A DNA stretch of 63,319 nucleotides, counting the filler, from Octopus bimaculoides (lineage: Eukaryota), in the NCBI RefSeq assembly GCF_001194135.2. It is 10 parts of 8 records of this genome, joined end to end, with 100 filler letters (N's around TTAATTAATTAA, not from the genome) between each part and the next. Parts side by side here need not be neighbours in the genome. Positions count along the whole stretch, not along the records: positions 1 to 18,566 come from NC_069006.1; 9 more parts are not named here. One strand, given 5' to 3'. Below are positions 8,987 to 9,192 of this stretch, piece by piece. Within the stretch, counting starts at the first letter, position 1, and every line of letters starts with the position of its first letter. Under the pieces are notes generated by a model that was given only the letters and a program-made list of their open reading frames with translations, made no database searches and was not told the origin of the DNA. The position numbers were made by a program, and so were the translations under genes.

Positions 8987-8991
<5 letters not shown>

Positions 8992-9192
8992 GAGCAGCCA
9001 AGCCCTAGCCAGGCGGCGCTGCTGACTATCTGTTCGAAAGTTATTTATCTAATTTGTCTCCTTTAGAGAGACTTAGAAATATTAATAACTCTATTTCTGA
9101 AAACCAGTGGATAGATTCCACTGAAATTAGATAAATAACTTTCGAACAGATAGTCAGCAGCGCCGCCTGGCTAGGGCTTGGCTGCTCTGCAT
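8987..9192. mobile_element. Foldback/MITE-like element: perfect 69-bp inverted arms around a 68-bp structured spacer
   Basis: 8987-9055 is the exact reverse complement of 9124-9192, checked base by base. It sits at the end of a (TA)n tract. The inverted repeat is certain; the MITE call is inference. Confidence 0.8.

Follow-up and report, generated by a model that had tools for sequence, protein, structure and literature searches.

The Drosophila foldback transposons FB and Galileo carry long arms composed of subrepeats in tandem, with flanking duplications of 7-9 bp, and the telomeres of parvoviruses consist of a palindrome of about 200 nt whose internal small palindromes give a branched hairpin, with unique sequence adjacent. 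Among the miniature elements (MITEs), Made1 is made of two 37-bp terminal inverted repeats (TIRs) around 6 bp and derives from mariner (Hsmar1) (PMC1784062). Inverted sequences are also produced by DNA repair: fold-back priming at breaks leads to inverted duplications (PMC10622511), and sequences that form secondary structure are reported to drive this snap-back synthesis (PMC5728401). Fold-back inversions in repair-proficient yeast involve "large-loop" hairpins, in which the loop has a median of about 36 nt and is sometimes much longer (PMC7467729). Inverted insertions have been reported with median arms of 50-150 bp, 30-119 bp between junctions and 0-4 bp of microhomology; they also arise within free single-stranded pieces that are later captured at breaks (PMC11724301).

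Here we describe a foldback of 206 nt (positions 8987-9192) in a window of 63,319 nucleotides of joined Octopus bimaculoides DNA, located in its first piece (1-18566, from NC_069006.1). The left arm (8987-9055) and the right arm (9124-9192) have 69 bp each, are exact reverse complements of one another (100%, 69/69, by repeat search) and enclose 68 nt. This is the sole perfect inverted repeat of at least 14 bp outside low-complexity sequence in the 18.5-kb piece, considering spacers of up to 400. Folded as single-stranded DNA, the 206 nt reach -102.4 kcal/mol, compared with -22.2 +/- 3.3 kcal/mol for dinucleotide shuffles (z = -24), while folding of each arm taken alone gave no special structure. 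Composition is uneven along the arm, with 68% GC in the outer 40 bp and 21% in the inner 29 bp. In the GC-rich outer part of the left arm, three AGCC units (8996-9010) are found 5-6 nt apart and are mirrored in the right arm; they could be a product of chance or a short iterated protein-binding motif.

The spacer or loop (9056-9123, 68 nt) is not palindromic, and nearly all of it is contained in three perfect Watson-Crick mini-hairpins. Hairpin 1 (9056-9072) has a 5-bp stem, GTCTC/GAGAC, and a 7-nt loop; hairpin 2 (9075-9098), with its centre 3 nt off the centre of the element, has a 7-bp stem, AGAAATA/TATTTCT, and a 10-nt loop; hairpin 3 (9105-9123) has a 7-bp stem, CAGTGGA/TCCACTG, and a 5-nt loop. 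An earlier note on this DNA had described flawless 69-bp arms around a spacer of three stem-loops, and our analysis recovered both, with the same coordinates and stems. The folding z-scores of the spacer are -4.7 (plus strand) and -3.2 (minus strand) with RNA parameters, and -4.2 and -4.8 for the two strands with DNA parameters. Beyond shuffles, real local sequence of the same piece served as a control: 14 of the 1227 68-nt segments outside simple sequence repeats fold as well as the spacer (4/568 when matched for GC), and four of the 1227 contain at least three hairpins of at least 5 bp. The hairpin-rich spacer, a feature noticed post hoc, is unusual at the level of about 0.3-1% of such local segments.

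Taken as a whole, the spacer is no more self-complementary than shuffled sequence (P = 0.79), so that pairing switches sharply from 69/69 to none at the inner end of the arms. On the same value, we discarded the idea that the palindrome once ran on through the spacer and decayed there. A tRNA-like cloverleaf was also rejected, given that the sizes of stems and loops do not fit and that ARAGORN returned no match.

The absence of mismatches between the arms (0/69) bounds their divergence at less than about 4% (95%). The claim of a very young element is supported in that the arms, with no mismatch, are young relative to the other repeats of the piece (76-85% identical), though not necessarily brand new. 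No substantial ORF, Pfam domain, tRNA or Rfam family overlaps the foldback, and the analysis supports a non-coding sequence that would form a long double-stranded hairpin if single-stranded or transcribed. The locus would be a hairpin-prone site on single-stranded DNA and, if transcribed, a source of perfect 69-bp double-stranded RNA.

The surroundings are those of a eukaryotic scaffold (34% GC and a CpG observed/expected ratio of 0.85 over 1-18566) rich in simple repeats, with 80 TRF rows; perfect runs 12 nt or longer take up about 15% of its non-N bases. The piece contains six N gaps (771-901, 2146-2707, 3587-4331, 5213-5363, 11054-11063 and 12338-12454), and both this repeat load and the gaps are what is typically seen when an invertebrate genome is scaffolded from short reads. 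The foldback itself is found within a gap-free stretch of 5.7 kb (5364-11053), with the nearest gap at least about 1.9 kb away.

At a closer scale, the foldback sits within a degenerate TA/CA microsatellite block (about 8620-9260). Its left arm adjoins a pure (AT)20 microsatellite (8949-8988; TRF period 2, 20 copies, 100% matches), whose final AT (8987-8988) doubles as the outermost pair of the inverted repeat, and which we propose as a candidate fragile or break site. The right arm is followed by a 29-nt tail of unique sequence (9193-9221, 52% GC), after which TA/CA-rich simple sequence resumes (9222-9251, seen in the sequence and by TRF). This tail may be native flank continuing the right arm, or else it may belong to an inserted fragment as its unpaired end. 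TA-rich sequence thus stands on both sides of 8989-9221 (9222-9233 versus 8949-8988), and the foldback together with its tail may interrupt one former TA tract; short unique islands are also present elsewhere in the block, for example at 8905-8948, so that this arrangement does not decide the matter. Regarding composition, the left flank has 22% GC and the right flank 40%, so that the contrast with the arms is strong on the left side only. The earlier picture of GC-rich outer arms in AT-rich surroundings consequently stands for the arms and the left flank, and less so for the right.

The ends of the foldback were inspected for target-site duplications (TSDs). The arm tips read ATGCA.../...TGCAT, with AT on both flanks. 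A TA duplication of the Tc1/mariner MITE type was not found, as ends placed at GCAG...CTGC are flanked by AT/AT and ends placed at TGCAG...CTGCA by TA/TT. Nor did we find the 7-10-bp duplication of hAT, Mutator, P or FB elements (left 8 bp ATATATAT, right 8 bp ATTGACAA or TGACAAGG), and the TTAA or TWA duplication of piggyBac and PIF-Harbinger elements is absent at both boundaries. These results agree, at both boundaries, with the earlier observation of an AT on each side and no TA or 8-bp duplication. Given the sequence of the tips, a palindromic TSD, either AT (outermost) or TGCA (one base in), could hide within them; AT or TGCA flanks in or beside a TA tract carry little information.

Two fragments of Tc1/mariner-type (DDE_3) transposases are arranged tail-to-tail around the foldback. 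Fragment A (7397-7759, plus strand) has three in-frame stops, and fragment B (9413-9729, minus strand) is broken by at least one frameshift as well as by at least two stops in frame; each keeps roughly the last third of the protein, the N-terminal two-thirds being absent. An exhaustive HMMER search of a representative library with the 61-aa open stretch of B gave 1013 relatives at E <= 0.001, whereas a protein word search with the transposase fragment gave no match. The full-length relatives of B combine DDE_3 with Tc3-type HTH domains, and most of those with a name belong to the pseudoscorpion Cordylochernes scorpioides, one belonging to Octopus bimaculoides. Fragments A and B have no DNA similarity to each other and about 39% amino-acid identity over 31 residues, which ruled them out as the arms of a larger old palindrome. 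The foldback arms show no similarity to A, to B or to the DNA downstream of them, a comparison for which both fragments are too decayed to be decisive. We consider A and B old independent insertions, not demonstrably the source of the foldback.

Sequence relatives of the foldback were sought inside and outside the piece. Within the 18.5 kb there is no second copy of the arm and nothing similar to the foldback, in line with the earlier remark that it is unlike the other families present there. The external collections covered viral, metagenome, prokaryote, plasmid and phage DNA, none of them holding animal-genome DNA. Exact 24- and 26-mers of the arm have no match in viral (IMG/VR), metagenome (JGI) or genome (GTDB) contigs. 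A gapped pattern of both termini hit four metagenome loci unrelated in sequence and no viral contig, the inner arm and hairpin 3 returned a single chance 20-mer in IMG/VR, and blastn against plasmids and phages yielded no relative of the foldback. At the protein level, a word search with two full-length translated frames of the element (four of the six arm frames) found nothing, and the exact products of seven ORFs of the stretch are not on record; the sequence string had no match in the literature. Rfam 15 gave no family at the gathering threshold and, up to E <= 10, only low-complexity sub-threshold matches, mostly to the simple repeats on either side; a few fall on the element itself, with scores far short of the respective gathering values. 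ARAGORN detected no tRNA in the foldback. One of the four metagenome loci (775-973 of WNFB01514021.1) belongs to an unrelated GC-rich contig with a long inverted repeat of its own, a sizeable palindrome that was hit by chance, having in common only the 11-nt termini of the pattern.

Taken globally, the foldback is most likely of recent origin, either as a scar of DNA repair or as a miniature transposon, and we see no link to any virus. As our leading hypothesis, one that we hold tentatively and as somewhat short of probable, we propose a young, one-off inverted duplication generated by fold-back (snap-back) synthesis during repair at the edge of the (AT)20 tract. From the anatomy, the only part observed directly, we infer the steps of the mechanism, the direction of copying and the origin. 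The original order would have been (AT)n, the loop (9056-9123), the right arm (9124-9192) and then the sequence from 9193 onward. A break or a stalled fork between the AT tract and 9056, followed by resection, would expose a bottom-strand 3' tail ending in loop sequence. The three mini-hairpins would then compact the 68-nt loop, allowing the 3' end to fold back and prime on its own strand; copying of about 69 nt would produce the left arm, and the new end would be joined to the AT tract via the 2-nt AT overlap. According to this scheme, the left arm would be the newly synthesised copy and the right arm the native template. In a variant of the mechanism, the fold-back would have taken place on a displaced fragment from elsewhere that was captured at the break, in which case the insert would span 8989-9221 and include 9193-9221 as its unpaired tail.

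Several features point to snap-back synthesis. Complementarity of 69/69 followed by its abrupt loss is the signature of one arm having been copied from the other. The junctions argue in the same direction, as there is no canonical TSD and the identity of the flanks is limited to AT/AT, that is, a 2-nt overlap with the AT tract; on the other side, the right arm passes into unique sequence with no junction signature (52% GC in the tail, 40% in the right flank). The foldback is single-copy in the 18.5-kb piece and has no further copy in the viral, metagenome, prokaryote, plasmid and phage collections, and the site adjoins a pure (AT)20 that is itself part of a long block of TA/CA repeats. Moreover, the hairpin-rich loop (at the 0.3-1% level) is explained by no other reading.

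The comparison with reported fold-back events is also favourable. In common with them, the foldback has identical inverted segments tens of nt apart, an abrupt end at a non-palindromic loop, no TSD and an overlap (2 nt) within 0-4 bp, and its 69-bp arms and 68-nt gap are inside the ranges reported for inverted insertions (PMC11724301). Those events require single-stranded DNA able to form hairpins and take place where the sequence is fragile, as we propose here. They were, however, described in yeast mutants, cancer cells and other experimental or somatic settings, whereas the present foldback would be fixed, or at least assembled, in an animal germline. Other considerations speak against snap-back synthesis: most snap-back fills are shorter than the 69-nt copied tract, a GC-rich outer arm next to a very AT-rich left flank is what an insertion would give, invertebrate genomes rich in TEs commonly harbour young MITEs, and a TSD in the form of a palindrome (AT or TGCA) is possible. 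The locus is probably not selected for anything. Were snap-back synthesis the origin, this would be a clean example, from nature and in the germline, of a palindrome produced by repair beside an AT microsatellite, marking how the fragility of simple repeats creates hairpin loci, with possible raw material for small-RNA genes.

The strongest competitor, which we consider rather unlikely although by no means negligible, is a very young non-autonomous DNA transposon of the foldback or MITE-like kind, from an uncatalogued family, in which the GC-rich ends of about 40 bp would be candidate transposase-binding TIRs. Such an element would have inserted at AT or TA where the (AT)n tract ends, and its tips may conceal a palindromic duplication of 2 bp (AT) or 4 bp (TGCA). 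Its sharp ends, its length of about 200 bp, its non-coding character and its appearance as a GC-rich island against the AT-rich left flank are all compatible with this origin, as are the transposase remnants of Tc1/mariner type on both sides. Precedents exist in the nearly palindromic Made1 (PMC1784062), in Tc1/mariner MITE families that can come from microhomology-mediated miniaturisation (PMC3814204) and in the TIR and MITE families of octopus, many of them reported as recently active (PMC13282606). With Made1 and Stowaway-like MITEs, the foldback has in common its short, non-coding and mostly inverted structure, a stable hairpin, a TA-rich context and nearby Tc1/mariner remnants; unlike them, it lacks a TA duplication, its 69-bp arms are flawless and its 68-nt interior is structured, and neither further copies nor a matching autonomous element were found in the piece or in the viral, metagenome, prokaryote, plasmid and phage collections. 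The resemblance to FB and Galileo lies in the inverted arms being most of the element, but here the arms have no tandem substructure beyond the three AGCC units and no 7-9-bp duplication is present. The transposon origin is further weakened by the absence of TA, TTAA, TWA and 8-10-bp duplications, by the lack of a second copy or fragment in the 18.5 kb or in the viral, metagenome, prokaryote, plasmid and phage DNA searched, and by arms that are unlike the neighbouring transposase remnants and their downstream regions. A pairing of 69/69 that stops abruptly is unusual for the TIRs of a family consensus, and the hairpin-rich interior is left unexplained. If the foldback did belong to a mobile family, it would define a foldback or MITE family that is young, absent from the catalogues and unusual in its target signature. 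The label "non-autonomous element" given to it before is best treated as a hypothesis, with no family members among the sequences searched; the interpretation of the earlier note is partly supported overall, and the repair-made inverted duplication, absent from it, fits the anatomy at least as well.

The other explanations are much less probable. An artefact of assembly or gap closing in a short-read scaffold, with an unreal second arm or a collapsed longer interior, is improbable: the scaffold does have six N gaps and about 15% of perfect simple repeats, and the foldback adjoins an (AT)20 tract, where contigs tend to break, but it is located in the gap-free stretch 5364-11053 (5.7 kb, nearest gap at least about 1.9 kb off), its spacer is complex and non-repetitive, and the four arm-spacer and outer junctions are unique, each needing consistent read support. 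Slightly more doubtful still is an undescribed DNA element, mobile or replicating, that does not duplicate its target, with the foldback as its end or as a full copy in miniature; it would be recognised through the four-way-junction hairpin of a long stem plus three mini-hairpins. Examples, in an invertebrate genome, would be the end of an unknown ssDNA replicon or that of an element mobilised by a nuclease of the rolling-circle type. We give little credence to a selected hairpin-RNA gene, either an endo-siRNA or miRNA precursor or an ADAR substrate, in which the 69-bp duplex would be processed into small RNAs and the inverted repeat kept for that reason, a role that is compatible with the other origins. 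A perfect 69-bp duplex would be a Dicer or ADAR substrate if transcribed, and it is accepted that small-RNA genes can be born through inverted duplication (PMC3237417; PMC1784062), the foldback having in common with endo-siRNA loci and the inverted-duplication model (PMC3237417) the capacity to yield long perfect double-stranded RNA. There is, however, no Rfam family at the gathering or E-value threshold, and no target is evident, since the 18.5-kb piece holds no other arm-complementary sequence and the arm translations have no match. In addition, the hairpins are plain Watson-Crick and fold equally on both strands, pointing to an origin at the DNA level and not to a strand-specific RNA. Least probable of all is the captured terminal hairpin of an ssDNA replicon similar to a parvovirus or densovirus, or the end of an element moved by an HUH nuclease; the long stem with its internal mini-palindromes would serve as the hairpin of the replication origin, with 9193-9221 as the adjacent unique sequence. 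Here the likeness to parvovirus and densovirus termini is one of general shape, with about 200 nt of palindrome, a branched fold with internal small palindromes, no TSD and an adjacent, unpaired unique sequence of 29 nt, to which the three AGCC units could speculatively be added as an iterated binding motif. Unlike those termini, the foldback has three internal arms instead of the usual two, a perfect stem lacking the bubble or asymmetry usually found there, and neither viral genes nearby nor a database match. Pfam, applied to all six frames of 6901-11400 and to 20 further open stretches, detected no Rep/NS1, capsid or other viral domain, and within about 2 kb of the foldback there is no Rep/NS1, no capsid and no intact transposase. 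The arm, the inner arm, hairpin 3 and the paired termini are unmatched in IMG/VR save for the chance 20-mer, and an isolated terminus without adjoining viral sequence would be unusual; the earlier proposal of an ssDNA-replicon terminus thus gained no positive evidence from the domain and IMG/VR searches. Under either of the two main explanations, repair or transposition, the locus is a local curiosity and not a new principle, and only a new replicon terminus, if true, would be of wide interest.

Two further repeat features were recorded elsewhere in the 18.5-kb piece. Long ATA/ATT tracts extend over 12542-12820 and 18287-18566. A SINE-like short dispersed repeat, unrelated to the foldback, occurs three times (1805-1935, 3428-3552 and 13357-13417), with 76-85% identity between copies and one of them inverted.
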